Sequence record: MN695334.1
Length of the DNA stretch: 64,000 bases
Direction: 5' to 3' (one strand)
Made by a program: the position numbers and the translations under genes. The notes below the pieces were generated by a model. It worked only from the letters and a program-made list of their open reading frames with translations. It ran no database searches and had not been told where the DNA came from. Positions within the stretch are counted from its first letter, which is position 1; each line of letters opens with the position of its first letter. Positions 3 to 55,577 of this stretch are shown here, piece by piece.

Positions 3-218
3 GCTTGGGAAGATTCTGGTGATGAGTGGTATGAATTGGTTTATGATGATCGGAGGTATGCAACTGTTCCACCAATAAGTGTTCGGGAATGGGCCGGAAC
101 AAATTCCGCCGACTCGAATTTTTATCCGAGAAATGGTTCGATAAATTTGATTAAACACAATGATGAGTTGGGCTCAGATTTTAATAAAATCGCTGATGTA
201 ATTGAGGCTTATTTTTGA
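3..218 (+). CDS. Hypothetical phage protein, 5' truncated by window edge
   Basis: Frame open from position 3 (AWEDSGDEWYELVYDDRR...) to TGA at 216-218; C-terminal LIKHNDELGSDFNKIADVIE motif is common in phage small proteins. Confidence 0.6.
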   Translation, partial: AWEDSGDEWYELVYDDRRYATVPPISVREWAGTNSADSNFYPRNGSINLIKHNDELGSDFNKIADVIEAYF

Positions 219-768
219 TATGCTTACTCCTAAAGATTTGATTGAAATTTACTGCGAGAAAATCACGGGTCGTGATATTCATTATTATCACAAAGAATAT
301 AATGATCTAGCAATAAATTTTTCTTTTGATATATATCCTTTACAATATTATCTCGATATGCCTGTAGAATTTTGGAGACCATATTGGGATAATATTGTAA
401 AAGTGTGTCAGGCTATTGCCAATAATCAAGAAAATTTTAACATGCAAGAATGGCATTGTGGATCTACACATTGTCTCGCTGGGTGGGCACAATGTCTATC
501 TGAACCAAAGAAAGTTTATGGCACAATTAATTACCTATATTATTACTTTGAACCAAATAAACTATACAAGAAAAGAAGTAAAGATGGTTTATTTGCTTCA
601 GATATTGTTCGGGATGCCGTTATTTTTCTATCACCAGTGATGTCTCCATTTTTTTATCTGACTGGCCGATCCTCTGAAATGATGAATGAATTCATTCTAC
701 CTGTCGCCAATATGTACCAGATGAAAAACCGGCATACCAACGAGGCACCAACGAGGATTTTACCCTAA
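202..768 (+). CDS. CGTxHCxAGW-motif family protein, copy 1 of 7
   Basis: WDNIVKVC...FNMQEWHCGSTHCLAGWA...LSPVMSPFF aligns by eye with six other ORFs in the window. Confidence 0.8.
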   Translation: MRLIFDMLTPKDLIEIYCEKITGRDIHYYHKEYNDLAINFSFDIYPLQYYLDMPVEFWRPYWDNIVKVCQAIANNQENFNMQEWHCGSTHCLAGWAQCLSEPKKVYGTINYLYYYFEPNKLYKKRSKDGLFASDIVRDAVIFLSPVMSPFFYLTGRSSEMMNEFILPVANMYQMKNRHTNEAPTRILP

Positions 769-872
769 GATATAAGGGTAAAGAGGACATACCACTCAAA
801 TACACTTTTCGAAACCATTCACCCAAATATCACAATAAACATAAATAATTATGGTCCATCGCCATAATTAAA

Positions 873-1094
873 ATGATCGAAATTCTAGGTGTAAAATTAA
901 CTTATGACGCTTTAGCATTTCTTGTGCTATTTGCGGCTTCCGAGCTACTTCCTTTCCTACCTATAAAAGGTAATGGTTTGGTAGATATAATTCTCCGTTT
1001 GGCTCATCTAACTAAGCCTCTTCGCACTGAAGATGAACAAATAGCCGAACTATCTGCAAAAGTTAAAGAACTAACTAAAATTGCTAAAAAATAA
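873..1094 (+). CDS. Small membrane protein, possibly holin-like, probably late-expressed
   Basis: Hydrophobic ALAFLVLFAASELLPFLPI followed by a coiled, basic C-terminus; ATAAATA late-promoter-like motif at 841-847. Confidence 0.5.
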   Translation: MIEILGVKLTYDALAFLVLFAASELLPFLPIKGNGLVDIILRLAHLTKPLRTEDEQIAELSAKVKELTKIAKK

Positions 1095-1142
1095 GACTAC
1101 TTTTAAATTATGAAAATTAGTGAAGTTTTTAAAAATGTATAT

Positions 1143-1174
1143 GCAGCCAGACTCATTGTAGCTGGCTGCCTTTT
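1143..1174 (+). terminator. Rho-independent terminator
   Basis: GCAGCCAG...CTGGCTGC 8-bp stem followed by CTTTT. Confidence 0.7.
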
Positions 1175-1247
1175 ACTATGTTTCAATTTACTTGCTCTTT
1201 ATGTCTGGGATCAAATTATCCTTACTTTCCAATAAAGCATACAAATT

Positions 1248-2162
1248 ATGACTGGAATTGATGATGTAGTATTCAATAGATTTTTGGAATTGTGTGATAG
1301 CCACGGCATTTCACCAATGGCTCAAAATGCGCTGGTAGAATTTTTATATGAGACTTATTATCTTGGTCATGATAATGCATGTAAACAAATGCAATACAAA
1401 CAGGATTTGAAGGTTGGAATTGAGAATTGGAAGAAAGAATTGAAGCAAAGAGAAGAAAACGAAAAAAGATGAAGAGAAATTATTATGTTAATTGAATCAC
1501 AAGAAAGTACTATTATGAGAAAATTTAATCTTGATTTTATTGGTGAAATTGTTTCAAGCCCCGCCGGAAAATCAACTTGGTGTGGGACAACAATCAGATT
1601 CTATGGTAAATTTAAAGAGCCTGAAATTGCTTATCAAAGATACCGCAGAGAAAATTTAATTGAGGCCATCGAAATAAAAGACAGGCCACCCGAAGGTTAT
1701 CATATGTGTTCGGCATTTCAAGTAATTCCTGAACAATATCTATATCTTAAGAACTGATGAAACTTATTGATAGATATAATCAATTTTACAACAATGAAGT
1801 TTCTGGACTTCCACATGGAATGCCTATCTCTATGGAACAACTACAAGCAATTTCTTTAGAGTGTATGGTGAAAGCGTTTGCTCGTAAATATAATTTTAAA
1901 GACACTATTCCAGTGGAAGATATTTTAAATCTAGCTCAACAAATTCATATTCAAGGAAAGAAAAGTAATGGAACCCTATGATCAATTTATCCGAATCGAT
2001 GAATTCGGTGGAAACATCGGATATATAAATTGGATAAATAGTGACTTATCGACCGCACACACTTATTGGTGGAGTGGCCTACCATATCCTAGTCAATATT
2101 GGGGAGATACTTTTTTCTACTGGCATAAACGATTACTACAATATATTCCTCCACATAACTGA
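1248..2162 (+). other. Run of four small hypothetical ORFs
   Basis: Closely packed or overlapping + strand ORFs (1248-1472, 1485-1757, 1757-1981, 1968-2162); no recognisable motifs. Confidence 0.6.
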
Positions 2163-2211
2163 AGAATAATAAATTTATATTCTTTTATTATATAATAACA
2201 TAAAAAACATC

Positions 2212-5097: not shown

Positions 5098-5114
5098 ACA
5101 CAAAATTATAAATT

Positions 5115-5774: not shown

Positions 5775-5784
5775 GGAAAAAATT

Positions 5785-6288: not shown

Positions 6289-6298
6289 GAGAAATAAA

Positions 6299-24808: not shown

Positions 24809-25165
24809 ATGAAAAGGAAAATTAACGGAAAAAAGTACTATATCGAGCCAAACACTAATCTTCGGGACGTTGATCTTCAAGGTGCAAATCTTGAAGATGC
24901 CATTCTCCAAAATGCTGATCTTCGACGTTCTAATCTTCGGAATGTTAATTTTCGACGTGCTAATCTTCGAGGCGCTATTCTTCGAGGTGTTAATTTTTAT
25001 TGTGCTGATCTTCGACGTGCCGATCTTCGGAATGCTGATCTTCGTGGGGCTGATCTTCGGAATGCTAGTCTCCAAGATGCAAATTTTGAAGGTGCTAATC
25101 TTCGGGGTGCTTTTTGGGATTATGCTAATGTAGTAGGAACTATTCTTCATGTGGAGAGCTATTGA
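24809..25165 (+). CDS. Pentapeptide-repeat protein (stand-alone)
   Basis: Tandem A(D/N)L(R/Q/E)x repeats. Confidence 0.9.
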   Translation: MKRKINGKKYYIEPNTNLRDVDLQGANLEDAILQNADLRRSNLRNVNFRRANLRGAILRGVNFYCADLRRADLRNADLRGADLRNASLQDANFEGANLRGAFWDYANVVGTILHVESY

Positions 25166-25532: not shown

Positions 25533-26994
25533 ATGAAAATTATAAATGTAACTAAGTGTATTACTTATTACGTGGAAACCAATTCCGATGAATTCCCAGA
25601 TTATCGGACAGATGAAAACGGAGAAAATTGGGAGAATGCCATGGGTGAAAGTTGGGAGACTGTGTATTTCTACGGAAACAAAAATCACAACCAACTTCCC
25701 GAATTATTCCAACAATATTTGAAAACAATAAAGCCAGCTGAGAGTGATATTTTATGTAAATTTGAAGAATGGTTCAACGATTGGTATGGTAGATTCTCAC
25801 TTAGATCTGAATGGTTCTATGGTGATTGTAAGGTAGAAGATATAAAAGAAAGAGAGGATCTTATGGATCAATGGATGCTCTCTGCATTTATGGCTGGATA
25901 TAATGCAAATAAACAAAATGAAAAAATGTAATCATTATGATTGCGGTTGGTGTTACGCACATAAACACGTAAACACAAGTGCAACAAATGGTGCATGTAA
26001 ATCCCCAGAAACATGTGACTATTATAAAAAAATGAATGACGTAAAAAATAATGATATCATCGAAATCAACGGTGTAAAGTATAAGCGTATACAGGAAGAA
26101 CTACCCCAAACACTATATGAGAAATTCTGGGAAAGATATCTCAAATACGAGTCAATGAATACGGAAGAAACCACAAGTCAATTTATTGATGGTCTAGTAT
26201 CCGATGTTGAAGAATGGTTACCTAAAGAAAGATGGAGTGAGTGTATGGATGCATTTGATAGGGGATATAATAGAGCCCTTCATGACATGAAAACGACGAT
26301 GTAAATGATCAAAAATGGAAATTAAAATCAAACAGGATAGTTCAGGAACCGGAAGTATCACATGGGAATTGCATACAGGACCAGAAGAAATAGATGAATA
26401 TACTGGTATAGAAGATACTTTAGATGAATGTTTCAAAAAAATTAAGCAAAGCCTTCTTCTTAATTGTTTGGATTATGCGAATGTGGATGATTTATTGGAA
26501 AATATAACCAAAAAGCATTTTTCTGGTGTGAGTACATTAAAAGCAAGAAACTCAGATGATTTAGATTTTCATGATGTTTCAGTCTGGAGTATTAGGAGTG
26601 CATTATATGCTGCATTACGTGAAGGTGTCAAATGGAACTTATAGTGAGAAGTGCCCTAACGCCTCTCTGGGGCTGTCCTAGAGGCTCCTGTGGGCCCTTA
26701 TCGCGCCATTTACCACGCCATAATGGCACGATAGCCAATTGTGCCAGAAATGGAACTGTCCACCATCGTGGTGATAAGCGTCAAAAATTGATATAGTTAG
26801 ATCGAACCAAAACCCGGTTACCGTAAATCATGAAAAACCAAAAAACTTTCTATTCTCGCGCAATGATTGAAGATGCAGCCGAATTTCTTTGGGTGAATTG
26901 CGGTATTGCGGTAGATTCGTCTGAATATAGGTGGGATGATGATAAAACTATTGAAGAAGCAGTCAAGAAAGGCTGGAAATTCCACTTCTATTGA
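25533..26994 (+). other. Cluster of hypothetical ORFs
   Basis: 25533-25931, 25903-26304, 26315-26644 and an untracked 54-aa ORF 26830-26994 behind the promoter at 26742. Confidence 0.55.
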
Positions 26995-27043
26995 ACACAC
27001 ACAACAATCGCCATATACTATCTTTGTTCCCACTGAACCTCCA

Positions 27044-27859
27044 ATGAAAAAAACAATTAACGGAATAGAATACGATATCAACCCGAACGCAAATCTGCAG
27101 AACGCAAATCTTGCGGACGCAGATCTTCGGCTCGTAAATCTTCAGAACGCAAATCTTGATGGCGCAAATCTTGAGAGGGCTCGTCTCATGTATGCAAATC
27201 TTGTTGGCGCAAATCTTGAGAGGGCCCGTCTCATGTATGCAAATCTTGGTGGCGCAAATCTTGAGGGTGCATATCTTGAGGGTGCAAATCTTGATGGCGC
27301 AGATCTTTCGCGGGCAAATCTTCAGGGTGCAAGTCTTGAACGAGCCCGTCTCATGTATGCAAATCTTGTGGACGCAAATCTTGAGGGTGCATATCTTGAG
27401 GGTGCAAATCTTGAGGGTGCAAATCTTCGGAACGCAAATCTTGCGGCCGCAGATCTTCGGTTCGCATGTCTTCGGAACGCAAATCTTCGGAGTGCAAATC
27501 TTGAGGGTACAAATCTTGAGGACGCAAATCTTCAGGATGCTGCGCTACCTAATTTTCAAATTGTCCCAACTGAAGGTGCATTTATTGCATACAAAAAAGT
27601 TGATAGCGATGGTATAATTAAGATTGAGATTCCTGAAGATGCCCAACGGACCTCTTCTTTAATTGGTAGAAAATGTAGAGCATCACATGTTAAAGTCCTT
27701 GAAGATAGTGGACATTCACCAACTCATAAGCACAAATCAATTTACTACCTCAAAGGTGAGACCGTTTATGCTGATTCCTTCGATGCGGACATTCGGATTG
27801 AATGTACCAACGGCATTCATTTCTTCATGACAGAAAAAGAAGCACAAGAATGGCGTTGA
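27044..27859 (+). CDS. Pentapeptide-repeat protein with C-terminal DUF5758-like domain
   Basis: ANLxx repeats then AFIAYKK...IEIPEDA...RKCRAS...ECTNGIHFF; likely start ATG 27044 behind TATACT 27014-27019. Confidence 0.85.
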   Translation: MKKTINGIEYDINPNANLQNANLADADLRLVNLQNANLDGANLERARLMYANLVGANLERARLMYANLGGANLEGAYLEGANLDGADLSRANLQGASLERARLMYANLVDANLEGAYLEGANLEGANLRNANLAAADLRFACLRNANLRSANLEGTNLEDANLQDAALPNFQIVPTEGAFIAYKKVDSDGIIKIEIPEDAQRTSSLIGRKCRASHVKVLEDSGHSPTHKHKSIYYLKGETVYADSFDADIRIECTNGIHFFMTEKEAQEWR

Positions 27860-32585: not shown

Positions 32586-34439
32586 TTACACTCAAACCAC
32601 ACTACAGCGGAAAGTTTGAGGCTTTTCGTTGTGCAGACGGCACACAATATGCTCGTCTTGAATTCCCTAGTGGATCTTATGTCTGGTTCAGATTTGATTA
32701 CACTACCGAGACATATCAGAGTTTTGATAATGAACTATTTGAGCCAAGTGGAGTTAAGACGCTATTACAAAAATGTCTCGAAAAATCTTATCGAGATTCT
32801 AAAACGGAGGTTTAATATGATTATTAATGATGTAATTGATGTTATGGCCATCGTAGCCATTATGATTGGCCTTATGGTTTTTACCGTCCAGATCGCTAAG
32901 ATCAAGGGCACCCGATAAATTGTATTAAAATCAAATGAAAACGACTATCAACATTCAATTGACACATGAAGAGGCACGTGCGCTTGCCGAATTTCTCCCG
33001 TACAACGATTTTTGGAATGAAGAACCCAACAAAACGATGGGTAAACTGAAAGAACAACTTTGCGAAATTCTTGGCGTCAAAGCACACGATATGTAATAAT
33101 TATGAAAGAATATGAACGTCACATCATACGAACTAAAGGTGCAGCCTGGTGTGGGGCTAGATTATCAAGTTTTGATTGGTATTTCCAGTCTATTGATCAT
33201 GCTGTTTTAGAAATGGAATCAGGAAGTCTTTTGCCATGTAAAAAATGTTTAACGACGGCTAGTCTTGAAGTAAACGAAAAACTATCCCAACTATAAAATG
33301 AAAGCATATAAATTTGAAATTATCTGTTTTGATCCAAACGGGGATTGTGATTATGATTCTATGTTCTATGAATTGAAAAACCAGAAATACTTTTGTGTCC
33401 AAATTATTTCCACACAATCCACTGAAATTGGAGAGTGGGAAGATGATCATCCTCTAAATAGGCACTCAACCTCAGAAGAATTTATTAGATCTGCTGATTG
33501 GGTGAAGGAGGAATTATGAGTGATAAAGTTACAGTTGCAGTCACATTGGAGCATAAAAAAGAATTAGAACGAGCCGCCGCCTTACTAAATTGTGAAGATT
33601 GGTTCGAAGTACTTGGAATCGCTGGAGAACTAATTATAAAATACGCAGAGCAATATATCAAAGGTAAGGAGGCCATCATGTTTTGTAAACCAGAACTTGG
33701 GAAACTCTACAGTGAAAACGAAGAGTTTTTTAATGCCCTGTGTGAAGAGGGCGTCGTTGAATGTTTAACGCCGTTTGTATTAATCAAGTCAAGCCAGGTA
33801 CAGCCATGACCCCAACCACTCTCTTAACTCTCATTACCATGAAAAACAAACTGTACGTGTTTTTAAACAAACATAGAGCGATTATCTTAGTCCTAATGAT
33901 TACGTCTTGGTTATTTACTATTTTTCAACTTAGCAATAGTTCGCTATCTGGGGTAGGACTAATTTTTATGACTGTACTTGCGGGTTTAGCTATTTTCCTA
34001 ATGATTGAAGACACGAACAGGAAACATGAAAAAGCCACACAGTTCCTTATGGATCAACGCAATAGCTCGTCTCCACATTGGGACGGTTGTGTGCGATACG
34101 CCAAAGACATTGAACCTCGATTGATGTTACTCCGAGATCGGATAGAAAAAGACCGACATGAAGTAAATCGTCTTGAGCAGACAAAAAATGACTGATATTC
34201 TTCTATTAGAAGGCCCAGATGGAAATAGATATAAAGCGACACAATGTCCTGGTGATATATGGTACGTTGAGGATTTCTTAAACATGAGGTCTTCTGATTG
34301 GGCACTAAGTCAACGTTCTGCTCTCTGGTGGAGTGGTGCAACATATACTACTGAAAAATTAAAAGAAACGTTTTCTATTTTGGCAGCAGGTAAAACTGAT
34401 AAAAATACTATCGGGGAATCTATTCACAATGCTTATTAA
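32582..34439 (+). other. Cluster of small hypothetical ORFs
   Basis: Packed + strand ORFs; 33761-34195 has two TM segments. Confidence 0.55.
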
Positions 34440-34704
34440 AGGAACTTATCAAAAACTACTTCTTGTGGAATCAATATCAAGTTTTAACTCAGAAATCAAT
34501 TGAAGAACCACTCAAATAGTCCAGTTCGATAACTGTCACATAAACTGGACCACACAACCTTCTCATGCACCATAATAAGATCACACCCAACCAAAGCAAA
34601 CATGAAAATCTGGCAAACCTATCGTAATGTTGATGGAGTGACACTAGGACTGGATATTGATTGATACTGTTTTTAAAACTATTCTTTACTACACCAATTA
34701 AAAA

Positions 34705-35283
34705 ATGATTACTACAACTCATCTTACCGAATATTACAACAATATCCTCAAACGGGTTCAAGGTTCGGAGAAGGCTCCATATCCTTTCACAAAAGATCTT
34801 CCACTCAGTCAATTTGAATGGAAAAATCTAGTGGAGGTGTGTTCAATTATTAAAGCCAACTCTAATAGGTTCAATATGGCTACGTGGCACGATAAAAAAG
34901 AGTCATGTGGTACTGTACATTGTATCGCGGGTTGGGCCGCATCACTTATGGTAGCAGATACAAATACAAATACATTCAGTTATAATGTAGAAGAAATTCC
35001 AGAACAACATTATGAGTCTATTATGAATACAAACATGTCATATGCTCCAGGTATCTTTGCCGTTTCAACAATTGCAAGTTACATGCTTTCGAATTATCTA
35101 TATCCATTCTTCTTTCTGACCACTGCCCATCTTGGTCTTCCTTTAGATTATGATATCGAGACTGTCATTATGGAAGAACTAATTGAACCCATTCTTGAAA
35201 TTGCAAGTCAAGAATGCCTGACTCTCTCACAAGAAGTCACACAATTTATTGAGAAAGCAAAACAAGAAACCTGTTTGGCGTAA
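34705..35283 (+). CDS. CGTxHCxAGW family protein, copy 2
   Basis: WKNLVEVC...FNMATWH...CGTVHCIAGWA...LSNYLYPFF. Confidence 0.85.
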   Translation: MITTTHLTEYYNNILKRVQGSEKAPYPFTKDLPLSQFEWKNLVEVCSIIKANSNRFNMATWHDKKESCGTVHCIAGWAASLMVADTNTNTFSYNVEEIPEQHYESIMNTNMSYAPGIFAVSTIASYMLSNYLYPFFFLTTAHLGLPLDYDIETVIMEELIEPILEIASQECLTLSQEVTQFIEKAKQETCLA

Positions 35284-35673
35284 CGGCCCAAAAACTGACA
35301 CACTGTAACCTCTGTTAGTCTCACTTATGAAGAAAAAAGAATCACCTAAATCCTACTGAATTACAATATGACAGCACAATTATTTGAATATAAGAACACC
35401 TGGAGTACTCCACGACTAGGCTTCTTCACTGAATTTCTCTATCCAGATATTGGGCACTATGTAAGTGCTCATTCTCTTGTCTCTGGTCTATCCCTAGATG
35501 AATTTAGTGAAGAGAAAACATTTCTTCGCTCTTTGGGTTCATTTAAAGTTACAGGTGAATATTCTGATGTTCGACTATTCGCCCAATCTCTAGAAAAAGA
35601 TTACAAGGACTACATCAGTTTCTTTTGTGACTGGGATCAAACTGACTCTATTTTCAACTAATTATTATTATTC

Positions 35674-36480
35674 ATGATTGAAATCGTTCTGGCTACACTT
35701 CTAAACACAAATACACCTGTTCTTTCCACAATCGAGATGGAAAGTGTCCCACATGTAAGTACTAGTTCTGTTCACATTTCTAGTCCTCACATTAGTGAAC
35801 AACTTCACGCCAGCCCAAGCATTCCGGCGCCATCTACTTTTAGTATTGGGCGTACAAGTTCTGCTGGTGTGGATATCGCCCGCACCTACAGCAGCCGCCC
35901 CTACAGCCCTCCTAGCCGCACCTACAGCCCTCCTAGCCCCCAAAGTCGTCCTACAGTTAATCTGAATACCTATAATGTTGCTCGACCTTCAACACCACTT
36001 AGTCCTAGTCAAAGGTCTTTGAGAATCGAGAGTGCCCCAAGAACACCTTCTGGTGCAATCAATCTATCTAATTATCCTGTTGCGACACCTAAACCAAAGG
36101 TTTCTCCTCCGACTCCTGCACCTGCAAAAGTTTATGTTCCTCGAACAAATCCGGCACCACCTGCACCTACGAGGGTATATGCAAATCCAGCACCTTATAG
36201 GGAACGACCTGTAATCATTCGTGAGAACAACTCTATCATTGATAATCCTTGGTTTTGGATGTCAATGTTTAACAACAATCAACGGCCACAAACTGTCATT
36301 CAACAACCGGCTCCTATCATTCAACAAGCACCGAATGGTAGTATTGTTGCACAACCAGCAACTCAACAACCTATTGTACAACGAGCCTCTACTGGCAACT
36401 TCTTTCTCAATTTTATGGTTGTAGTTTTGATTGTAGTTGTGATCGGCATGGGTATCGCTCTTCTTAAACTTCGCCGTTGA
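35674..36480 (+). CDS. Pro/Ser-rich membrane-anchored protein
   Basis: Low-complexity P/S/T middle with internal tandem repeat (35881-35940), NPWFWMSMF motif, C-terminal TM followed by KLRR. Confidence 0.7.
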   Translation: MIEIVLATLLNTNTPVLSTIEMESVPHVSTSSVHISSPHISEQLHASPSIPAPSTFSIGRTSSAGVDIARTYSSRPYSPPSRTYSPPSPQSRPTVNLNTYNVARPSTPLSPSQRSLRIESAPRTPSGAINLSNYPVATPKPKVSPPTPAPAKVYVPRTNPAPPAPTRVYANPAPYRERPVIIRENNSIIDNPWFWMSMFNNNQRPQTVIQQPAPIIQQAPNGSIVAQPATQQPIVQRASTGNFFLNFMVVVLIVVVIGMGIALLKLRR

Positions 36481-41633: not shown

Positions 41634-42101
41634 ATGAAAGCTCACGAACTCGGACTAAAACTTCTTAACGGCCCCAATCATGATGTTTTGATCGAAGATC
41701 CTGTTGGTTGTCTTCGTTCACCACTATCCACATTTGAGAGTAATATCAACGGACAAAATGAAGAAATGTGTGGGGATGCAGAGGGTAGATTGGGCGAAAC
41801 AATCGTCAAAATCGTATTGTAAATACACTTCTCTGAACAGTCTGATAACTGGCACAAGAACCCGAATCTGCGCCCACAACCAGGATACAATTCTTTTATT
41901 CCAACCGAATTTCTCATGAAAGCTCACGAACTCGCTCAAGTTTTGTTGACTGGTCCTAATGTTGAAGTAGTATTCAGTGATAGTATTGGACCTATTGATA
42001 TTGAGAGTTGTTTTGAAAGTAAAATCACTGAAAATGATGCAGACAATTGTGGTAACTGCGAGGGTCGCGTTGGCGAAACTGTAATTGCTCTGTCTAACTG
42101 A
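41634..42101 (+). repeat. Tandem paralog pair of ~61-aa MKAHEL proteins separated by a promoter box
   Basis: MKAHEL...GPN...FES...CG..EGR.GET shared by 41634-41822 and 41916-42101. Confidence 0.8.
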
Positions 42102-42132: not shown

Positions 42133-42564
42133 ATGGCAAATTCTTTAATTAAATATCCCGCTGATATGAACGCGGAAAACTCACCTGAACTGAATGTAAT
42201 TGAGTATTGCCATGATTTGATTATGTGGCTCGAAGATGATTATATAGAAAATTGCATTAAAGAACTTTCGCGTCGGGGTGTAGGTGAATCTCAGATTGAT
42301 TCACAAATTCTAAAGATGAAGAATAAAATCGAGTTTGAATATATTATCGAATCAGGTAGAAAGTATCACAAAATTATTGAAATCTCATATAGCAATCGAA
42401 GTGTTCATTGTTTTGTAGATATGAAAACTGGTGATGTATATAAAGCCGCCTCGTGGAAATCTCCAGCACAACGACCACGATTTAATTTACTTTCTGAAAA
42501 TGATCGTGAATGGTTAAGGAATCATGCTGATTATGCTGGAAGATATCTTTATCTCAGACTATGA
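42133..42564 (+). CDS. Conserved cyanophage early hypothetical protein
   Basis: GRKYHKI...SVHCFVDMKTGDVYKAASWKSPA. Confidence 0.65.
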   Translation: MANSLIKYPADMNAENSPELNVIEYCHDLIMWLEDDYIENCIKELSRRGVGESQIDSQILKMKNKIEFEYIIESGRKYHKIIEISYSNRSVHCFVDMKTGDVYKAASWKSPAQRPRFNLLSENDREWLRNHADYAGRYLYLRL

Positions 42565-43067: not shown

Positions 43068-43628
43068 ATGTTTTCTATTAAAAAGCTCAGTCAAATTTAC
43101 AACAAAATCTATAACGAAATCTGTGATATTTCGTTCTTTGGCCGAATGCTAGACAACCCATATCGTCAGAGGGTTGGATACAACAAATACGAGAGTCTGA
43201 CTGAACAACAGTGGCAGAATCTGTTTGATGTTTGTTCTGTCGTTCATGCAAATTCTCATCTATTTGATATGAACTACTTCCATAATATTAATGAGTGTGG
43301 CACAACTCATTGTCTAGCTGGTTGGGCAGTAGCAATCGAAATGAATGATTATAGACATACTTACATCGATTACGGCAATAGCGCATGGTTAAATCTTGTA
43401 GAAAAGTATGGCCTTCAAGGATTTCCTAGTTCTGGTGATATTGCGAGGGCTATGTTGTCTGAATACATAGAACCATTCTTCTATCTGTGTAGAGGTATGC
43501 GTACGTCGGAGAATATGATTCTACATGAATTGATTTTGCCGATGATTGCAGAAGGCAAGAAAGATGGATTGATTGTATCGCCACATGTACAAGATTTCAT
43601 TACCAAAACTATCAATCATCAATCATGA
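43068..43628 (+). CDS. CGTxHCxAGW family protein, copy 3
   Basis: CGTTHCLAGWA; termini near-identical to copy 4. Confidence 0.85.
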   Translation: MFSIKKLSQIYNKIYNEICDISFFGRMLDNPYRQRVGYNKYESLTEQQWQNLFDVCSVVHANSHLFDMNYFHNINECGTTHCLAGWAVAIEMNDYRHTYIDYGNSAWLNLVEKYGLQGFPSSGDIARAMLSEYIEPFFYLCRGMRTSENMILHELILPMIAEGKKDGLIVSPHVQDFITKTINHQS

Positions 43629-44364
43629 CTATCAGTACGGAAGAATACAATCAGGTGATGAGTCTGTTGTTGGAAGATGCACGGAAAGTGTATGACAACA
43701 AAATCAATCAGGCTGCCCGTGCATATTATGTAATTATCATTGAGCCACTTGAGAAGAAGTATGGTATTAAGTTTAGGCAGGGTAATTGTCATTATTGTTT
43801 CGTGATTAACGAGACGAATGAGACAATCGATTATTTTGATGTGAACAGGTATGATGAACAGGATTATGTGAATCGTGTTTATGACGATGATAACGTAGAT
43901 CACGAAGAAGTTCATTATCGGTCTTCGCTGATGAAGGATCTTGTACCGGTGTTTGATATGCTCAACACTCAAATCTTTGTTAGAGACCAGTTCGGGTATT
44001 TTGTGCCATGAAACGAACTGAACTGCTGAAATACAATGGAGGTATAGCGGCCTCTCTTGATTATGCCAAGTCCAAGTATCAAGAAAGTCTGGAGAATTTG
44101 GGTAATCAGTATTATCGTGATGTGATTGTTCCACTTGAAAGTAAGTACAATCTGAAGTTCTTCTGTGGCAATGGTGACTGGTTCTTTGTACATGTTCCCA
44201 CTGAGATTTTAATTCACCCCACAGACATTGAATTGTATGGTGTAGCAAATCTGGCGTGTGATGAGATTCTGAGTACAGAAATGTACGATGATCTTACAGT
44301 AGTATTTGATGCATGTAGCATTGAACTGGAGTATAACAATTTCTTCGGTTATTGCATCGGATGA
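43625..44364 (+). CDS. YY..PLEKKY family, copies 2 and 3 (43625-44011, 44008-44364)
   Basis: AYYVIIIEPLEKKYGIKF and QYYRDVIVPLESKYNLKF. Confidence 0.7.
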
Positions 44365-44505
44365 ATAAGAAAGTATTCATCATCATTCAAATTGTCACAT
44401 TGATTATTAACTTGATCGTTTTGTCACTTCAGATCTACAATCTTAATGTGCAAAATCGCACTCTAGAGAATCTAAAACAAAAACAAACACAAAAAATTAC
44501 TCATC

Positions 44506-45039
44506 ATGTTTTCTATTAAAAAGCTCAACAAGATTTACAATAAAATTCATAATCAAATCAATAATCTTCATTGGACTGATCATTGGTTTGATAATCAATA
44601 CCCCAATCGTTATAACAGTTACGACAGTCTGACTGAACGACAGTGGCAGAATCTGTTTGATGTTTGCTGTATCATCGAAGCAAACTATGATCGATTTGAT
44701 ATGGCAGAATATCATAGCTACAATGAGTGTGGCACAACTCATTGTCTCGCGGGATGGGCCGTGGCATTAGAGGCCAATGATCCTGATTTTAGCTATACAT
44801 ATAGTCTTGATTATCTCCTAGAAAAGTACAATTTGAGATACCGTGCAGCTACTTCTGATATTGCTGCCGCTATTCTATCGGAGTACATTAAGCCATTCTT
44901 CTATCTTTATCAGGGACGGAATCCCGAAAATGTCATGTATAGAGAGTTCATTCTACCTGTGATTGAAGAAGGCAAGAAAGATGGATTGATTGTATCGCCA
45001 CATGCACAAGATTTCATTACCAAAACTACATACAAATGA
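44506..45039 (+). CDS. CGTxHCxAGW family protein, copy 4
   Basis: CGTTHCLAGWA. Confidence 0.85.
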   Translation: MFSIKKLNKIYNKIHNQINNLHWTDHWFDNQYPNRYNSYDSLTERQWQNLFDVCCIIEANYDRFDMAEYHSYNECGTTHCLAGWAVALEANDPDFSYTYSLDYLLEKYNLRYRAATSDIAAAILSEYIKPFFYLYQGRNPENVMYREFILPVIEEGKKDGLIVSPHAQDFITKTTYK

Positions 45040-45566
45040 TTACTAAAGAAAGACTTTTAGACCTTTATACTAATTGCTATGATAAGATCTATTATGATGA
45101 CATAACTGATGCCGTAGAATATTATCTAGCAGAACTTCTAGGATGTGCTATAATTCAATCTGATCATGATCTAGAAATGTCGAAGGCACAGTGGGACAAT
45201 CTAGTAAAAGTATGTCAGACTATTGTTACTCATGAGCAACAATTCAACATGAGTGCTTATCATAAACCCAATATGTGTGGCACTTCTCATTGTATTGCTG
45301 GCTGGGCGGTTTGTGTTGAATTGAATAATTTCAATATCACTAATTACATGCTAGTGAGTGGAATAGAAGCCAAGTATGGATATAAATTTGATGATATGTT
45401 TACCACGAATTGCACTATAGCTTCTGCTGTTCTATCGCCATTAGTATATCCGTTCTTTTTTCTTCTTGGTGGTGATATTAAAGTAACCAATCAAATTATG
45501 ATGAATGAATTTATCAAACCAGTACTTCAGATTGCCAAAGAACAAAATGTTGTGACAGTTGAGTAA
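45036..45566 (+). CDS. CGTxHCxAGW family protein, copy 5
   Basis: CGTSHCIAGWA. Confidence 0.85.
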   Translation: MITKERLLDLYTNCYDKIYYDDITDAVEYYLAELLGCAIIQSDHDLEMSKAQWDNLVKVCQTIVTHEQQFNMSAYHKPNMCGTSHCIAGWAVCVELNNFNITNYMLVSGIEAKYGYKFDDMFTTNCTIASAVLSPLVYPFFFLLGGDIKVTNQIMMNEFIKPVLQIAKEQNVVTVE

Positions 45567-45632: not shown

Positions 45633-46229
45633 ATGACAAAAATCATCAACAATCACGAAATCAGGCCAGGCGCAAATCTCAAAGGTGCCGATCTGTTTAA
45701 TGCAGATCTTTCGCGGGCAAATCTTCAAGGCGCATGTCTTGAACGAGCCCGTCTCATGTATGCAAATCTTGGTGGCGCAAATCTTCGTGGTGTTGATTTT
45801 GATTCTGCCTTGCTTATGAATGCAAATCTTCAAGATGCAGATCTTTCTGGCGCAAATCTCTTTGGTGCAAATCTTGTTGGCGCAAATCTTGATGGCGCAA
45901 ATCTTGTGGACGCGAATTTGTATAAGGCAAATCTCGAAGGTGCCGATCTTCAAGGAGCAAATCTTCAGGGCGCATCACTACTGGATGCAAAACTCAGAGG
46001 TGCAAATCTAAAAGGAACTATTCTTGAATACAATGAAGAATTAGTCACGACAGAACATGATCCTAAGTTGGTCTTTTTTATTGATGAATCTATCAAAAGT
46101 CTAGAGGCTAAGCAAGGATATCGATCCGCATTTTATACAAGAGCCGCATATGACTACATTCATAAAATTCACAGTACCACACTAGAAATTGCTGTAGAAA
46201 GTTATGATCAGCAACTTGAACAAGCATGA
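45633..46229 (+). CDS. Pentapeptide-repeat protein with unrelated C-terminal domain
   Basis: ANL/ADL repeats then a ~65-aa helical tail. Confidence 0.88.
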   Translation: MTKIINNHEIRPGANLKGADLFNADLSRANLQGACLERARLMYANLGGANLRGVDFDSALLMNANLQDADLSGANLFGANLVGANLDGANLVDANLYKANLEGADLQGANLQGASLLDAKLRGANLKGTILEYNEELVTTEHDPKLVFFIDESIKSLEAKQGYRSAFYTRAAYDYIHKIHSTTLEIAVESYDQQLEQA

Positions 46230-46533: not shown

Positions 46534-48015
46534 ATGAAACTCTCTTCTCAACAAGTCGTGGCAGTCGATGCTATTGAAAATGGGAAAGATTCGATTGTAC
46601 TTGAGGCCGTGGCCGGGAGTGGTAAAACTAGCACTCTGATTGAAATGTTGAAAGTCACCATGGGTTCGGTGAGATTTTGTGCATTTAATAAGGCAATTGC
46701 ACAGGAAATTAAGGCAAAGATTGCAAATCAAAATCTTTCTCATGTGAGAGTAGGAACTCTTCATAGTTTTGGTTTCGAAGCACTTCGTGGTGCAGTCTCC
46801 AGAGTGAATGTGAATGGAAATAAGCTTCAGGATCTTGCACAACAAGAATTTAATGGTGAATATCAAATTCTCAGGCAGTTTGTGTCTTCGGCTGTTGCAA
46901 TGGCCAAGGAGGTTGGCATTGGGGCATGTGTAGAGAATACTTATGAAAATTGGATTCAGATGTTCGATCATTATGATCTGTGGGAATCTCTTTCTATAGA
47001 AGTTCCTAATGAGTCTGCGGTTGATGCTTGTCAATATCTTCTGAATCTATCAAATGAAATCACAGATACCATTGACTTTGCAGACATGATTTATCTGCCG
47101 ATTCTGAAAAAATATAAAATCTCTCAGTGTGATAATGTCTTTCTGGATGAGGCCCAGGATACAAATGGTCCACGTAGAGAACTNGTCAGAATGATGTTGA
47201 AGCCGGGTGGTAGACTGGTTGCTGTGGGTGATTCTCATCAGGCCATCTATGGTTTCACAGGTGCAGATCACAATGCCCTGAAACTCATTCAAGAACAATT
47301 CAATGCCAAATCTTTGCCTCTTTCGGTGACATTTCGTTGTCCCAAAAATGTAGTCAAGGTGGCACAACAATGGGTAAATCATATTGAATCTCACGAATCT
47401 TCTCCTGAAGGTATTGTGGATGAGTGTGAAATCGCACAACTTCCCAGTATTGTAACTCAGAAAGATGCTATTATCTGCCGAAACACCAAGCCACTTATCG
47501 AGGTCGCCTATACTCTCATTCGCAACAACGTTCCTTGTAAAGTAGAGGGTCGTAAGATTGGNGAAGGTCTGATTAAACTCGCACAACGATGGAAAGTCAA
47601 GACTGTACAACAACTTGCGGATAAACTGGAAGATTGGAAAGAAAAAGAAATTCTCAANTATCGTGAGAAGGGNAATGATACCAAGTGNCAAATTATCGAA
47701 GATCAGGCAGATACTTTGTTTGTCTTTATTGATCANTGTAAGGCTGATGATTTCATTCCTGTGTTGATTGAAAAAATCAAGGCTCTCTTTGATGATACTC
47801 AGAACAAGGAAATTCTGACTCTTTCGACCATTCATAAGTCCAAGGGTCGTGAATGGAATCGAGTTTTTGCACTTGGAATGACTACATATTCTCCTTCCAA
47901 ATGGGCCAAAAAGAGTTGGGAAATGCAACAAGAGAATAATCTTCTTTATGTTCAAGTCACTCGGGCCAAGGCACATCTGACTCGCGTAAATGTTCCCACA
48001 GTGAATTCCAAATGA
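46534..48015 (+). CDS. UvrD/Rep-like SF1 helicase
   Basis: AVAGSGKTST, LDEAQD, VGDSHQAIYGF, TIHKSKGREW, LYVQVTRAK. Confidence 0.92.
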   Translation: MKLSSQQVVAVDAIENGKDSIVLEAVAGSGKTSTLIEMLKVTMGSVRFCAFNKAIAQEIKAKIANQNLSHVRVGTLHSFGFEALRGAVSRVNVNGNKLQDLAQQEFNGEYQILRQFVSSAVAMAKEVGIGACVENTYENWIQMFDHYDLWESLSIEVPNESAVDACQYLLNLSNEITDTIDFADMIYLPILKKYKISQCDNVFLDEAQDTNGPRREXVRMMLKPGGRLVAVGDSHQAIYGFTGADHNALKLIQEQFNAKSLPLSVTFRCPKNVVKVAQQWVNHIESHESSPEGIVDECEIAQLPSIVTQKDAIICRNTKPLIEVAYTLIRNNVPCKVEGRKIXEGLIKLAQRWKVKTVQQLADKLEDWKEKEILXYREKXNDTKXQIIEDQADTLFVFIDXCKADDFIPVLIEKIKALFDDTQNKEILTLSTIHKSKGREWNRVFALGMTTYSPSKWAKKSWEMQQENNLLYVQVTRAKAHLTRVNVPTVNSK

Positions 48016-50027: not shown

Positions 50028-50111
50028 GCATCTGTGGCGGAATTGGTAGACGCAACGGACTTAAAATCCGTAGCCTTTCGAGGCGTGAGAGTTCGAGTCT
50101 CTCCTGATGTA
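50028..50111 (+). tRNA. trnL: tRNA-Leu(TAA), no encoded CCA
   Basis: D-arm GCGGAATTGGTAGACGC, anticodon arm ACGGA-CTTAAAA-TCCGT, T-arm GAGAG-TTCGAGT-CTCTC; no intron. Confidence 0.93.
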
Positions 50112-50475: not shown

Positions 50476-51141
50476 ATGTTACTTACACTTCTGACTTGCA
50501 TACAATTAGAAACAATCACAAATAATATACAAAAGAATTTTACTCTTACTCAGACTCAGCGCACTGAGTTAATCTCTCAAGTAAGACAATCGGCACCTCC
50601 AACATGTTGGCCGATGAAACGTGCAGAGGATCCTGTAACATTCGTGGGAGATTCAATTACAGCATTTAATAATTGGCAGGCTGCTTTTCCTGAAAGAATT
50701 ACATATAATCAAGGTGTTCCTGGTGATACTTCTTATCATATTGCAGTTCGGGCGAATACTATAAAAAACACTGGAGCCAAAACATATATTATGATGATGG
50801 GAATTAATGATATCTTATGGTGGAAATTTGACCCACAAAATATTCGTGATAGAATCGTAATGATTCGAGATTATTTAAAATCAACCACAGGATCTAGAGT
50901 TGTAGTACAATCTACAATTACATGTACCCGATCACTTTGTGGTTCTGAATCATTAAATAAAGTCAACGAATTAAATCGTCTTCTGAGAGATAGAATACCT
51001 AAAGAAGATTTTCTTGATATAAACACCGTGTTATCTGATAGAAATGGTTTAAGACCAGAATATACTTATGACGGCATACATTTAAATGCTGTTGGTTATT
51101 CTGTATGGCAACAAAAACTTAGATCTAGTGGATTACTATAG
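50476..51141 (+). CDS. SGNH/GDSL hydrolase with short N-terminal helical module
   Basis: VGDSIT, NQGVPGD, MMGIND, YDGIHLN - all four catalytic blocks. Confidence 0.9.
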   Translation: MLLTLLTCIQLETITNNIQKNFTLTQTQRTELISQVRQSAPPTCWPMKRAEDPVTFVGDSITAFNNWQAAFPERITYNQGVPGDTSYHIAVRANTIKNTGAKTYIMMMGINDILWWKFDPQNIRDRIVMIRDYLKSTTGSRVVVQSTITCTRSLCGSESLNKVNELNRLLRDRIPKEDFLDINTVLSDRNGLRPEYTYDGIHLNAVGYSVWQQKLRSSGLL

Positions 51142-51294
51142 ATAATTAACTACAGAAACCCTTCAAAAGCGACAAACACACTCTAGACACATAAAAAATA
51201 AAAGTCAAGTGTCTGTGGTACAGTTATTCAACTGTCACACTATATGGTATGAAGACATTATCCGTGATACATTTTTGGTGTTGAATAAAACATC

Positions 51295-52096
51295 ATGAAA
51301 ACTCTAGACTTTACGGATACTGAATTAGAGAAACTTCGTGCTCTGATTTATCGAGAAATGATGGTATGTTGTCGCAATAAGGATCAAATTTATCAGAATG
51401 AACTACAAATGATCTTTGATAAACTTAAGCCTTAAGTTTGTCTCAACTACGTATCAATCACGAATTATTACATCATGCAAACTGATCAGAACGAAAATCG
51501 TATTATCTGGGTGATTGGCGCGATGGAGCGTCTATCATGGCTTGGATATTTTAAGGCGATTGGTTATATTGTAAGTGAAGACGATATAGATCTTTATTAT
51601 GATCTAGATGATGCTCGTGAGTATCTTTTTGATTATGATGAACAGATCATGAGTTATCTGGAAGGCGTTTTTTATGGTAAAAACATGTCTCCGACAACGA
51701 TGCACGAAATATATACGTTACTTGTAACTTATAAGAATGACAGAAATCGCGTATTCTCCTATGGTATGAATCATTTGGTGGGAGCAATTTAAAATGTCAC
51801 ACCTAAATCTACATGAATTTGCAAAAACATTCATTCAACAATGTTGCGATCATGTTCCTTATCAGTTAGATTTTAATTCAGTATGTCAAGAAATTGAAGA
51901 TATATTGAATGAGAAGACTATCTGTGGTGATGATGATGTCACAGGATACTGGGAAATTCGTTATTTTTTTGGTCCACATGATTTGAGCTTTATTAATAAG
52001 AATTGGTGGGATACTTATAATAACCTATCATATGATCAACAAAAAGAAGTTCATGAATATTTAAAGAATGTTTGGCCTGATACTTGGAGACGATAA
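51295..52096 (+). other. Three small early hypothetical ORFs
   Basis: 51295-51435 (untracked, 46 aa), 51475-51792, 51794-52096, behind the box at 51218. Confidence 0.6.
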
Positions 52097-52405
52097 CATA
52101 TTAAATATTAGAATTTCATTAGAATCTCATTAGAGTTTTATAATGGAGTTCTTATTATACTATAATATAATATTGCAGGGTGAGTGACGATCTTTTTTAT
52201 CATAAAGGTTACATCACCTCTCGTTCAATTTTTATATTAAACAAGCATAAGAAGAATTTCTTTTAACTGAAGTCAGTCTAGCAGGTTTTGATGGCATTTG
52301 GGTATAAGCATCGCTTATCTGTCACATCAGCAGGACTTATTGATGAATGGTCGCAGTGGCGCTTTGAGTGTGCTATTCTATGGGAGTCACCAACAAATCC
52401 CGGTC

Positions 52406-53161
52406 ATGCTCAAGTTTTCCTTTGGTAACAGCAAACTTGCTAATGACACTCTGATCTTTAGTCTTCCTGCTGGTCAGTCTTGTCCCGGTGCAGATAAATG
52501 TCTTGCATTTGTGAATATGAATGGGGAAGGAAAGCGATCTATTGTGGATGGTCCACAAATGGAATTTCGTTGTTTTGCTGCTTCTAGTGAGGCAACATAT
52601 CCTCCTGTTTATAATTCTCGTCAGCATAATTGGACTACAATCAAAAATCTTATTAAGAATTTTGGTGTAGGTAAGGCTGGTAGTATGGTTGCAGAGTATA
52701 TTCAATCGATTCGTAAAAAATCTACCAAACTGGTTCGTATTCACGAATCTGGTGATTTTTATTCGGCGGATTACTTTGCGATGTGGATGCATGTTTGTCG
52801 TTTGATTCCTGATCTGAAGTTTTATGCTTATTCTAAGAATCTTTCTATGATTCTTGATTATGGCATGGACATGTTGCCTCAGAATTTCTATCTGACAGCA
52901 TCAAAAGGTGGTAAGTTTGATCACCTGATTGATGAAGGATTCTTTCCACGTTATTCTGTGGTAGTAAAGAATGATGCTGAGGCAGAGGCAATGGGTCTGG
53001 AAGTGGACCATGATGATTCACATTGCTATAAGCAAGATGGGCCATTTGCTCTTCTTGTGCATGGCATTCAGGCGGCTGGAAGTGAATGGGGCAAGGCAAT
53101 TCGTGAGCGTAAGAATAACAAACAGTTCACCGGATATAATAAAAATAAAGTCGCAGCATAG
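52406..53161 (+). CDS. GP88 (mycobacteriophage gene 88)-like protein
   Basis: GNSKL...FSLPAGQSCPGADKC...RCFAAS...VRIHESGDFYS...FYAYSK; likely start ATG 52406. Confidence 0.75.
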   Translation: MLKFSFGNSKLANDTLIFSLPAGQSCPGADKCLAFVNMNGEGKRSIVDGPQMEFRCFAASSEATYPPVYNSRQHNWTTIKNLIKNFGVGKAGSMVAEYIQSIRKKSTKLVRIHESGDFYSADYFAMWMHVCRLIPDLKFYAYSKNLSMILDYGMDMLPQNFYLTASKGGKFDHLIDEGFFPRYSVVVKNDAEAEAMGLEVDHDDSHCYKQDGPFALLVHGIQAAGSEWGKAIRERKNNKQFTGYNKNKVAA

Positions 53162-53254
53162 TATGTGATAACTGTGCCAGTGATACAACTGGCACATAAA
53201 TCTCCCATTCGCTTTTCCTTTCCCGTATATTATTCAAGTAAGCAACTGAAACAC

Positions 53255-54104
53255 ATGAACCGGTCACTCATTGTTGTTCAAATCAAGCCCAAAATGTTTT
53301 GTTCGATTGGACTGCATTGGGAGTATGGTCAAAAAATTGAAGATTGGTTGAATAGTCTGAATCTATCTGAGATTCATGGTCTCATTTCTGTAGGACATCG
53401 ATCCACAATTAAAGAATCTTATCGAGCACTTCCTTATACTTTGCCTGATGTTGATTGTAAGCATTGGACACATAAAACACTAAAGGAAGCAGTTCTTAAC
53501 ATTGAACATAAAACTCTTGCTTATCATAATGGCAAGACATGGAAATTCACTCATAATAATAATTAAATTTTAGGAAGGAGTTTGCCTTAAAAGTTACTCA
53601 ATGTGTAGATGTTAATATAAAGTAGTATGCCTCATTTTTATCGTCTATTGTCGAGGGTTGTTGTTTTAGGAAAGGATTGCCCCTTTCCTTTTTTTTATGT
53701 TTATAAAATTATAAATTTGCAGGGGAATTGTCGATCATTTAATCATAAAGCCTACTTCGGCTCTCCTTTCCTTGTGACATCATTCTAGCACCTTCCAGCG
53801 GCTTCTGTGAGCCTCTGGTGATCAGTGTTGCTTATGAGTCGAATCAGCAATGCTTATGAATAAATGCTTGACTTTGGAATCGTTATGCCTTATTCTATGA
53901 ATGTAGAAACGCATCAGATTCATGAATCAATCATTCTGCATGGCTTCGGATATTGAAACTCGTGCCACGATGTGGGCCGCGATTCATACTGACGGCACAC
54001 CGATTTACGTACAGCCTTGTGAACCACTTCTGTTTGATTCGGTGTGTTTAGCAAGTCTTTATGCAAATCTTCACACTCGCTTCAATTACGATCCTTTTTC
54101 GTAA
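53255..54104 (+). other. Two hypothetical ORFs (53255-53566, 53922-54104)
   Basis: Each sits directly behind its own promoter cassette; 53255 is the in-frame ATG downstream of the -10 at 53226. Confidence 0.6.
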
Positions 54105-54144
54105 TCAAAAAGTTTAATTCTAATTCAACTATTCCTTATTTGTC

Positions 54145-54774
54145 ATGCTTACTCCTATTCAATTCAAGCAAAACTTCTACCAAATGATGAAGGAAATTGA
54201 AGACAAAACTCTTGATGTCCTTTATGAATATGCGGAGGAACTTGCTTCTGAAATTTATCTCCGTGCTCATACACAAATCACTCAATTTCAGTGGAACAAT
54301 CTAGTTAAAACTTGTTCGGTAATTGCGGCCAATACAGATCGCTTTTATATGAACTCATATCATGATGCTTACAGGTCTGAGTGTGGTACAACTCATTGTC
54401 TTGCAGGTTGGTCAATCTCGTTGCTGTTGAAGGATACTAACTATGAGGATTCCCAAGTAGGCAAACTATTGATGGTACTGGAGAATTACACTGCTGACAT
54501 GGAACGATTTTTTTGTGAATATTCCGGTCCGAATAACTCTCAAATTGGTGCATTTTTGTTGTCGGAATATGTAAAGCCTTTCTTTTATATTACCAACAGA
54601 ACTATGTGGAAAGATAATCAACTTGTACTTAACAATACGGCTGAGGAATTGGTTACCAAATATCTCATCAATCCTGTGCTGGAAGAAGCTAAACGTGAAA
54701 GTCATGAATTGACTACTGAAGTACAACAATTCATCGAACGTGCCGGAAACAAAATTGAATGTGGTATTAAATGA
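54145..54774 (+). CDS. CGTxHCxAGW family protein, copy 6
   Basis: CGTTHCLAGWS...LSEYVKPFF. Confidence 0.85.
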   Translation: MLTPIQFKQNFYQMMKEIEDKTLDVLYEYAEELASEIYLRAHTQITQFQWNNLVKTCSVIAANTDRFYMNSYHDAYRSECGTTHCLAGWSISLLLKDTNYEDSQVGKLLMVLENYTADMERFFCEYSGPNNSQIGAFLLSEYVKPFFYITNRTMWKDNQLVLNNTAEELVTKYLINPVLEEAKRESHELTTEVQQFIERAGNKIECGIK

Positions 54775-54815
54775 AATAAAGAATCGGCAAGAATGAATCA
54801 CAATTAAAACAATCG

Positions 54816-54840
54816 GGAGCCAAATTTGGCTCCTTTTTTT
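54816..54840 (+). terminator. Rho-independent terminator
   Basis: Perfect palindrome GGAGCCAAATTTGGCTCC followed by T7; similar hairpins close other cassettes (~53669, 56465, 57052, 57988, 58612). Confidence 0.8.
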
Positions 54841-55043
54841 ATTGTTTATATCTTATAATTCTGCAGGCGAAGTGTCCTGTTTTGTATTATCACGCTTCTG
54901 CGCTTTCCTTGTTTGTTGAATACAGTCTAGCACGGCACAGGCGGCCCCGTGACCAACCCGACCAGTTTTCTAACTGTCCACCACCAGCCCCGGTTGCTAG
55001 TTTCTAGGTTGTATAATAATTATGTCGTCAAGGATTTTCTCTC

Positions 55044-55577
55044 GTGCTTACTCCTCTTGATTTTCGCAACAGTTTTAATAAAATTATGGCAGAAATTGAG
55101 GTGAAAGATCTTCCCGTCAACATTTTTATCCAACAAGAGAATTACAAAAAGATTCTTGCTGATGTAGATAAAACAGATACTTTCACTGAATATCAGTGGA
55201 GGAAGCTGGTCAGAGTTTGCCGGGCGATCAAAGAATATGAAACTCGGTTTTCAATGGACGATTGGCATTATAAAAAAGGTTGCGGAACAACACATTGTCT
55301 GGCTGGTTGGACACTTGCTCTAGAATATGGTGATATCGATATTGATGATATTAATGTGGATGATCGCAGGATGCTTGTTCCTGATGATTATATGAATGAT
55401 GAATATTTGAGCACACCCAAGACTGCTGAGTTTTTTCTATCAAAATATACTCGACCATTCTTTTTCTTCACGAATCGAGTTGATGGTGTTAATAAAGACG
55501 CAGAGAGGCTGGTCATGAAATACTTTATCGAGCCCATTCTTCAAGAAGACGATAAAGATAAGCTCAACAGCTTCTGA
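55044..55577 (+). CDS. CGTxHCxAGW family protein, copy 7
   Basis: CGTTHCLAGWT...LSKYTRPFF. Confidence 0.85.
   Translation: MLTPLDFRNSFNKIMAEIEVKDLPVNIFIQQENYKKILADVDKTDTFTEYQWRKLVRVCRAIKEYETRFSMDDWHYKKGCGTTHCLAGWTLALEYGDIDIDDINVDDRRMLVPDDYMNDEYLSTPKTAEFFLSKYTRPFFFFTNRVDGVNKDAERLVMKYFIEPILQEDDKDKLNSF

Follow-up and report, generated by a model that had tools for sequence, protein, structure and literature searches.

A family of eight small, diversifying genes in Synechococcus phage B3 (MN695334.1) shares a core which, judging from sequence comparison, is a widespread and unnamed domain superfamily borne by phages. Seven of the eight copies lie in the stretch of DNA analysed here, 64,000 nucleotides corresponding to positions 62001-126000 of the record and hereafter called the window; window position equals record position minus 62,000. 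We tentatively favour the view that the encoded proteins are metal-stabilised scaffolds, displaying variable surfaces that bind host targets. The B3 genome is circular, comprises 244,930 bp and belongs to the Kyanoviridae; B3 and its near-twin B23 are T4-like cyanomyoviruses from a subarctic lake, with Synechococcus/Cyanobium as host. The window consists of a long arm of small genes on the plus strand, ending at the baseplate module, where a gp25-like gene starts at 63110. The family genes are public as hypothetical proteins, and the domain itself is uncharacterised.

The copies in the window, gp113, gp206, gp224, gp228, gp229, gp245 and gp246, are intact open reading frames (ORFs) on the plus strand, all annotated 'hypothetical protein', which align from end to end as one family. 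Pairwise identity is 25-36%, with the exception of gp224 and gp228 (62%), and 20 columns of the seven-copy alignment are invariant, including W, C, F-x-M, H, C-G-x-x-H-C-x-A-G-W, L-S, P-F-F and I-x-P. An earlier sequence-only reading of the window had listed seven paralogs carrying a set of conserved blocks, and indeed every one of these blocks is found among the 20 columns. When the family profile was run against all six-frame ORFs of the window, the seven copies were recovered at E 2e-69 to 6e-50 and the next best ORF at E 0.28, a gap far beyond chance; thus, the window holds exactly seven copies. An independent profile (A3), constructed from distant standalone relatives only, retrieved just the same seven at E 3e-19 to 1e-15. 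The count of seven is nevertheless too low for the phage as a whole, as an eighth and more diverged copy, gp102, which also retains the His/Cys motif, is located outside the window; by tblastn, family places number eight in B3, seven in B23 and three in S-CRM01.

Concerning the starts, gp113 had been read from a TTG at position 202, which is most likely wrong, since the ATG at 220 is the annotated start and matches the other N-termini. The GTG start at 55044 fits the N-terminus common to the other copies in the alignment. The reading frames are intact in all eight B3 copies, and the products comprise 176-209 residues without a hydrophobic segment, with an isoelectric point (pI) of 4.65-6.2 and a net charge of -2 to -14. 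They are small, soluble, mildly acidic and, by prediction, mostly helical proteins. An upstream Cys, in a 'VC' column, is invariant in the seven and not across the wider family.

In a wider setting, 1.84 billion cluster representatives were searched exhaustively with HMMER, yielding 856 matches at E up to 1e-3, of which only 27 at E up to 1e-10. Full-length proteins of the B3 type make up the strong matches; these ~25 representatives derive from B23, S-CRM01 and contigs, up to 250 kb long, of freshwater metagenomes. The remaining matches cover the central region alone (~50-120 residues), with some alignments extending as far as the C-terminal helix, and come in two forms, either as standalone proteins of ~110-145 residues or as the C-terminal domain (~80 residues) of pentapeptide-repeat proteins. 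Using hhalign, the B3 family and the standalone set were joined at 99.6% probability over 53 columns. Pfam scans of the distant relatives gave nothing for the motif region, returning pentapeptide repeats only, in the fused ones, and the source names of the relatives are all 'hypothetical protein'. Relatives are undercounted in IMG/VR, which was scanned with a single narrow peptide pattern.

All contexts examined are phage or prophage, in early or accessory regions. Standalone relatives are situated in runs of tiny ORFs together with a weak Tad2-like match and Dam, or with AIPR and endonuclease VII, and one of them directly follows a C5 DNA methylase. The pentapeptide-repeat fusions, encoded on phage contigs, are found near Sipho_Gp157, DUF932, GP88 and HNH genes. 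Bacterial genomes contributed 35 loci, none of them cyanobacterial, with Streptomyces, Nocardia, Sphingomonas and Bradyrhizobium represented; two were inspected, the one beside an S24 repressor and the other beside RecT and a PDDEXK nuclease. Among cultured phages, single-sequence tblastn detected the domain in Gordonia, Mycobacterium and Streptomyces phages, again exclusively in proteins annotated as hypothetical.

The closest comparison is thus with the standalone Cys-Gly-Thr-x-x-Cys phage proteins of PHROGs 889, 30739 and 31265, exemplified by Gordonia phage Yvonnetastic and the Mycobacterium phages Courthouse, MiaZeal and Ariel. These share with the B3 proteins the homologous core and the setting among small early or accessory genes, whereas the B3 type has an additional variable N-terminal extension of ~45-55 residues, its own L-S...P-F-F and I-x-P blocks, and up to eight copies per genome. 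The PF00805 proteins with the same C-terminal domain have the motif and the flanking helices in common with the B3 family. Unlike these fusions, the B3 family proteins are devoid of repeats; in B3, the cluster gp224-gp229 is immediately followed by a pentapeptide-repeat gene in its own right, gp230, and this adjacency is preserved in B23 and in a 204,864-bp metagenomic contig (L009). The fusions in many phages and the kept adjacency of gp230 point towards a functional link between the family and pentapeptide-repeat proteins. Two further pentapeptide-repeat genes are present in the same arm, gp182 (24809-25165) and gp187 (26939-27859), the latter with a distinct C-terminal domain of ~100 residues; gp182, gp187 and gp230 all lack the His/Cys motif.

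No named family could be assigned, in agreement with the sequence-only reading. Scans of the seven proteins against Pfam-A and NCBIfam gave nothing near any cut-off, PADLOC-DB returned no defence-system protein match at E up to 1, and profile searches of PDB sequences (A1, A3) yielded no match, the best being at E 1.8-5.4. Only PHROGs 30739, 889 and 31265, all function unassigned, were detected, by seven, six and six of the seven copies, respectively (best E 1.9e-5, 6.3e-5 and 1.3e-4), with matches that are weak and confined to the motif region. An AlphaFold model of gp224, generated with 28 family sequences, contains ten helices and is of low confidence only in the loop bearing the His/Cys motif (predicted local distance difference test, pLDDT, ~55; overall pLDDT 84.3, predicted template modelling score, pTM, 0.86). 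Foldseek searches with this model revealed no neighbour in the PDB (best E 1.2, template modelling score, TM, below 0.25), and in BFVD solely the family's own members in B3, B23 and S-CRM01. The model of a standalone member (pLDDT 90, pTM 0.85) was similarly without a neighbour in the PDB (best E 1.4). Hence, the profile and structure searches proposed along with the sequence-only reading surfaced no characterised housekeeping family, and a literature search found no description of the family, the domain, the fold or its PHROG numbers.

Several specific candidates were considered and rejected. An AhpD or carboxymuconolactone-decarboxylase-like fold was represented by 6ohi and 3lvy at Foldseek E 2-3.5 and TM ~0.2 only, with no sequence match. 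A Cys-X5-Arg phosphatase, considered in light of the His-Cys-x-Ala-Gly stretch, would require an Arg six residues after the second Cys, a column where Val, Ile, Gln or Cys is found and where Arg is not among the four commonest residues; furthermore, the gp224 model is composed of helices throughout and the standalone model of helices and one short hairpin, without a central beta-sheet. Zinc-binding anti-sigma domains and papain-like proteases gave no match of any kind in the searches made. Membership of the B3 copies themselves in the pentapeptide-repeat family was also dismissed, as PF00805 matches none of the seven and the family ORFs display no repeat pattern.

The motif itself separates into an invariant and a variable part. 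Counted over 206 relatives with the motif, no sequence lacks either Cys, the Gly that follows the first Cys or the Gly three positions after the second one, and Thr (99%), Trp (99%) and Ala (96%) are nearly as constant. The inner His, immediately before the second Cys, is found in 192 of 303 motif-bearing proteins and is replaced mostly by Ala, but also by Gly, Tyr and others. The two His vary together: an upstream aromatic-His pair occurs in 152 of the 192 proteins with the inner His and in 4 of the 111 without it (odds ratio ~100), a count that overstates independence because the sequences are related. Of the proposed invariant H/C/H/C set, the two Cys hold throughout the superfamily, whereas roughly one in three distant relatives has other residues in place of the His pair; the B3 type always keeps both His, and many standalone members do not.

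In the standalone model, the two His are placed at facing positions of a two-stranded beta-hairpin (residues 26-29 and 32-35), with one Cys in the hairpin turn and the other directly preceding the helix that follows. Between the first His and the first Cys lie 0-7 residues, and the last His and Cys are direct neighbours. The only His and Cys residues of gp246, two and three respectively, fall on invariant columns. Taken together with the covariation, these observations fit a putative His2Cys2 metal knuckle in the B3 type. The predicted arrangement is akin to zinc-knuckle and treble-clef sites, with four candidate ligands on a beta-hairpin and the start of the following helix; it differs from these in the unusual ligand spacing and in the lack of a sequence or fold match to zinc-finger families.

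The divergence between close relatives was also analysed. The contig L009 is syntenic with window positions 33,300-55,000 at ~5% synonymous divergence, suited for comparing non-synonymous and synonymous differences per site (pN/pS); between the paralogs themselves, synonymous sites are saturated at 25-36% identity. The four family genes shared by B3 and L009 differ by 83 non-synonymous and 25 synonymous changes (pN/pS 0.83), as compared to 111 and 137 in 23 neighbouring genes (0.21), a contrast with Fisher P=2e-8 at equal synonymous divergence. Within the family genes, the conserved blocks hold 24 non-synonymous and 16 synonymous changes (0.39) and the variable segments 59 and 9, corresponding to a pN/pS of 1.58, which lies at or beyond the neutral level without being significantly above 1. 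Three segments are variable: the N-terminal extension (~45 residues), an insert after the motif helix and a linker before the last helix. Congruent with this pattern, the amino-acid differences across six close ortholog pairs reach 15-36% within the variable segments, as against 8-9% for the core.

The copy number is likewise in flux. In B23, a single gene, gp222 (L008:10071-10610, against window positions 43068-45039), takes the place of B3 gp224 through gp228. This gene matches gp224 in its 5' part and gp228 over the remainder, each at 98-100% identity, with the switch point in a stretch where gp224 and gp228 share 96% identity. By these identities, B23 gp222 is the product of recombination between tandem paralogs, an event that leaves gp225-gp227 absent from B23. 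The genome announcement noted four coding sequences present only in B3, without explanation, and the recombinant probably accounts for them. It also illustrates neatly, in a natural setting, how N- and C-terminal parts are reshuffled among tandem paralogs. Another difference concerns the gp204-gp208 block including gp206 (33761-36480), which is absent from L009 and substituted by two unrelated genes of 112 and 162 residues (L009:514-2189); the surroundings are 96-100% identical between B3 and L009, as in a cassette-type replacement. The proposal of expansion and diversification is accordingly borne out by the pN/pS contrasts, both between genes and between segments, by the B23 recombinant and by the gp206 island missing in L009.

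The contrast between core and variable segments, the flux in copy number and the phage-accessory contexts of the superfamily are what suggest a binding scaffold. It would be built from a helix, a short beta-hairpin with His...Cys-Gly-Thr-x-His-Cys, the following helix and another two hydrophobic blocks. A metal ion, probably zinc, would most likely be coordinated by the His pair and the Cys pair and would fasten the hairpin to the helix, and the three segments that are free in sequence and length probably form a partner-binding surface. The proteins may then bind, and so block or redirect, variable host proteins during infection, for counter-defence or takeover, each paralog being tuned to a different target or host variant. 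Three elements of this reading are inferred: that a metal is bound, that the proteins act through binding, and that their targets are host proteins. A role in anti-defence or host takeover, suggested by the genomic context alone, would be plausible.

Several observations weigh against this reading. Relaxed constraint would explain the pN/pS of the variable segments equally well, and the relatedness of the sequences weakens the covariation of the His pair. With other residues in place of this pair in roughly a third of the relatives, four-ligand metal binding is not the universal role of the motif. The hairpin loop is precisely the part of the gp224 model with low confidence, and the database searches gave no homolog of known activity. 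Finally, the near-invariant Gly, Thr, Ala, Gly and Trp around the Cys pair hint at a catalytic or cofactor site, the conservation there seeming, from the alignments, to exceed the usual need of a purely structural metal site.

The last point is also where the main rival finds its footing. Here, the proteins would be enzymes in which the invariant second Cys serves as nucleophile in modifying or cleaving some molecule of host or phage, and in which the variable segments set the substrate specificity. We consider this unlikely, even though the small residues around the Cys pair are near-invariant across the whole superfamily and both models place this Cys at the start of a helix. Thiol enzymes of the carboxymuconolactone-decarboxylase/AhpD-like and DinB-like kinds do appear among the Foldseek matches, but at the level of noise (E above 1, TM below 0.25). 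In addition, the neighbouring His is exchanged for Ala, Gly, Tyr or others in about a third of the relatives, a catalytic site would lack another invariant polar residue to complete it, and Pfam, NCBIfam and the PDB offer no enzyme-family match.

An alternative use of the same residues is that the Cys-x4-Cys pair represents a redox centre or an iron-sulfur site, possibly across a dimer, with which the proteins would sense or alter redox conditions in their photosynthetic host. In favour of this, the two Cys alone are universal, His2Cys2 ligand sets occur in iron-sulfur proteins too, and the host is indeed a cyanobacterium. Such a role is nonetheless quite improbable, considering that the domain is common in phages of Actinobacteria and in prophages of many non-photosynthetic bacteria, that there is no similarity to known redox or iron-sulfur families, and that a single redox function would not need eight fast-diverging copies.

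The surroundings of the genes were analysed for regulatory elements (Table 1). A recurrent promoter-like module was identified, in which a palindromic box of 14 bp is followed by a short conserved tail and, ~45-50 nt downstream of the box, by a -10-like hexamer, without a -35 hexamer. At up to one mismatch, the box occurs 21 times in the window as compared to ~2 times in shuffles; 20 of the 21 sites are intergenic, and in 16 the next start codon follows at +74 to +84 nt. A stable hairpin between box and hexamer is present in only 5 of 20 cases. The palindrome suggests a dimeric activator. The sequence-only reading had placed an early-promoter box before the genes at 34705 and 55044, and as motifs both are there: gp246 follows at the standard distance, while gp206 is preceded by a 20-codon mini-ORF (34603-34665), itself at the standard distance behind the box, which could be a leader peptide or an unannotated micro-gene. 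Early promoters of the sigma-70 type upstream of the copies are not supported, as sites of this type are not enriched (52 found, 58.7 expected) and none exists in the gaps before gp206 and gp246. The gap between gp245 and gp246 contains a strong intrinsic-terminator-like hairpin (54815-54834; 8 pairs, 5 of them G-C, then a T run), and the two adjacent genes thus appear to be separate transcription units.

Such a module invites the idea that the family members are DNA-binding regulators, for example the factor recognising the palindromic box. A 14-bp palindrome with 21 occurrences needs a dimeric reader, the modelled standalone relatives seem to show a helix-turn-helix-like pair of helices after the motif, and the domain is fused to pentapeptide repeats in relatives, repeats that can mimic DNA, as in Qnr/MfpA. 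We nevertheless judge this even less probable than a redox function: the acidic pI and negative net charge of all eight proteins argue against DNA binding, no DNA-binding family is matched, the changes sit in the variable segments rather than in a recognition helix, and the box is specific to B3 while the domain is present in unrelated phages.

Diversifying accessory multigene families are known as a kind, and in the hyperplastic regions of T4-like genomes ORFans are flanked by composite promoter/stem-loop cassettes (PeSL, PmSL; PMC2839356, PMC4122927). B3 resembles these systems in that small genes without assigned function, in a variable T4-like arm, stand behind a recurrent intergenic cassette at a fixed distance to the start codon, and in that gene content differs between near-identical phages. 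It is distinct in that a palindromic box substitutes for the -35 hexamer in the B3 cassette, with a hairpin in a minority of cases, and in that the one resolved rearrangement between B3 and B23 ran through the paralogs themselves and not through cassettes. The least probable account, and a very remote one, is that the copies are duplicates without function or in decay, which recombination between promoter-terminator cassettes has spread: the variable-segment pN/pS is indistinguishable from 1 and the copy number varies between close relatives, but eight of eight frames are intact, 20 columns are invariant despite 25-36% identity, the conserved blocks stay at a pN/pS of 0.39, and orthologs are retained in B23, L009, S-CRM01 and further metagenomic phages.

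Table 1. Family copies and associated features of phage B3, in window positions unless marked otherwise (aa, amino acids; HMM, hidden Markov model).
Feature	Position	Strand	Remarks
gp113 (b3_0113)	220..768	+	182 aa from ATG 220; HMM E 6e-50; upstream His directly beside first Cys
gp206	34705..35283	+	192 aa; HMM E 6e-57; first sizeable gene behind box 34522
gp224	43068..43628	+	186 aa; AlphaFold pLDDT 84.3, pTM 0.86
gp228	44506..45039	+	177 aa; 62% identity to gp224
gp229	45036..45566	+	176 aa; start overlaps gp228 stop
gp245	54145..54774	+	209 aa; terminator-like hairpin downstream
gp246	55044..55577	+	177 aa, GTG start; directly behind box 54963
gp102, eighth, more diverged copy	record 58994-59560 (L007:18994-19560)		~3 kb before window start; HMM E 2e-25
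gp230, pentapeptide-repeat gene	45633..46229	+	directly after gp224-gp229 cluster
Box upstream of gp206	34522..34535	unstranded	
Box upstream of gp246	54963..54976	unstranded	81 nt upstream of gp246 start
Box nearest upstream of gene run gp221-gp229	41838..41851	unstranded	run contains three family copies
Box sites (17 of 21)	8975, 16442, 18649, 28471, 30520, 31170, 34522, 37149, 41220, 41838, 45556, 51221, 53178, 54963, 55580, 56625, 57201		

In a broader view, the variable arms of large phages, with their multi-copy and fast-evolving accessory genes, are a productive hunting ground for counter-defence proteins. The domain link turns eight orphan genes into an entry point for an uncharacterised superfamily with hundreds of phage and prophage proteins, which takes in model actinophages and many pentapeptide-repeat fusions. 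If the scaffold reading is true, it would provide the first functional clue to the phage pentapeptide-repeat proteins that bear the domain. A more far-reaching version, which we regard as doubtful, is that the superfamily constitutes a new fold class of phage-encoded metal-dependent inhibitors, deployed alone, fused to DNA-mimicking pentapeptide repeats or equipped with a variable N-terminal extension; the B3 paralogs would then amount to a diversified set of counter-defence proteins, in which every member neutralises its own host protein, be it one of immunity or of housekeeping.

Apart from the family, precomputed Pfam matches on L009 supply names for several B3 hypotheticals of the same region: gp222 of B3 is a DUF7717 protein (42133-42564), gp232 a UvrD-type helicase (46534-48015), gp238 a GDSL-like lipase/esterase (50476-51141) and gp242 a GP88-family protein (52406-53161).

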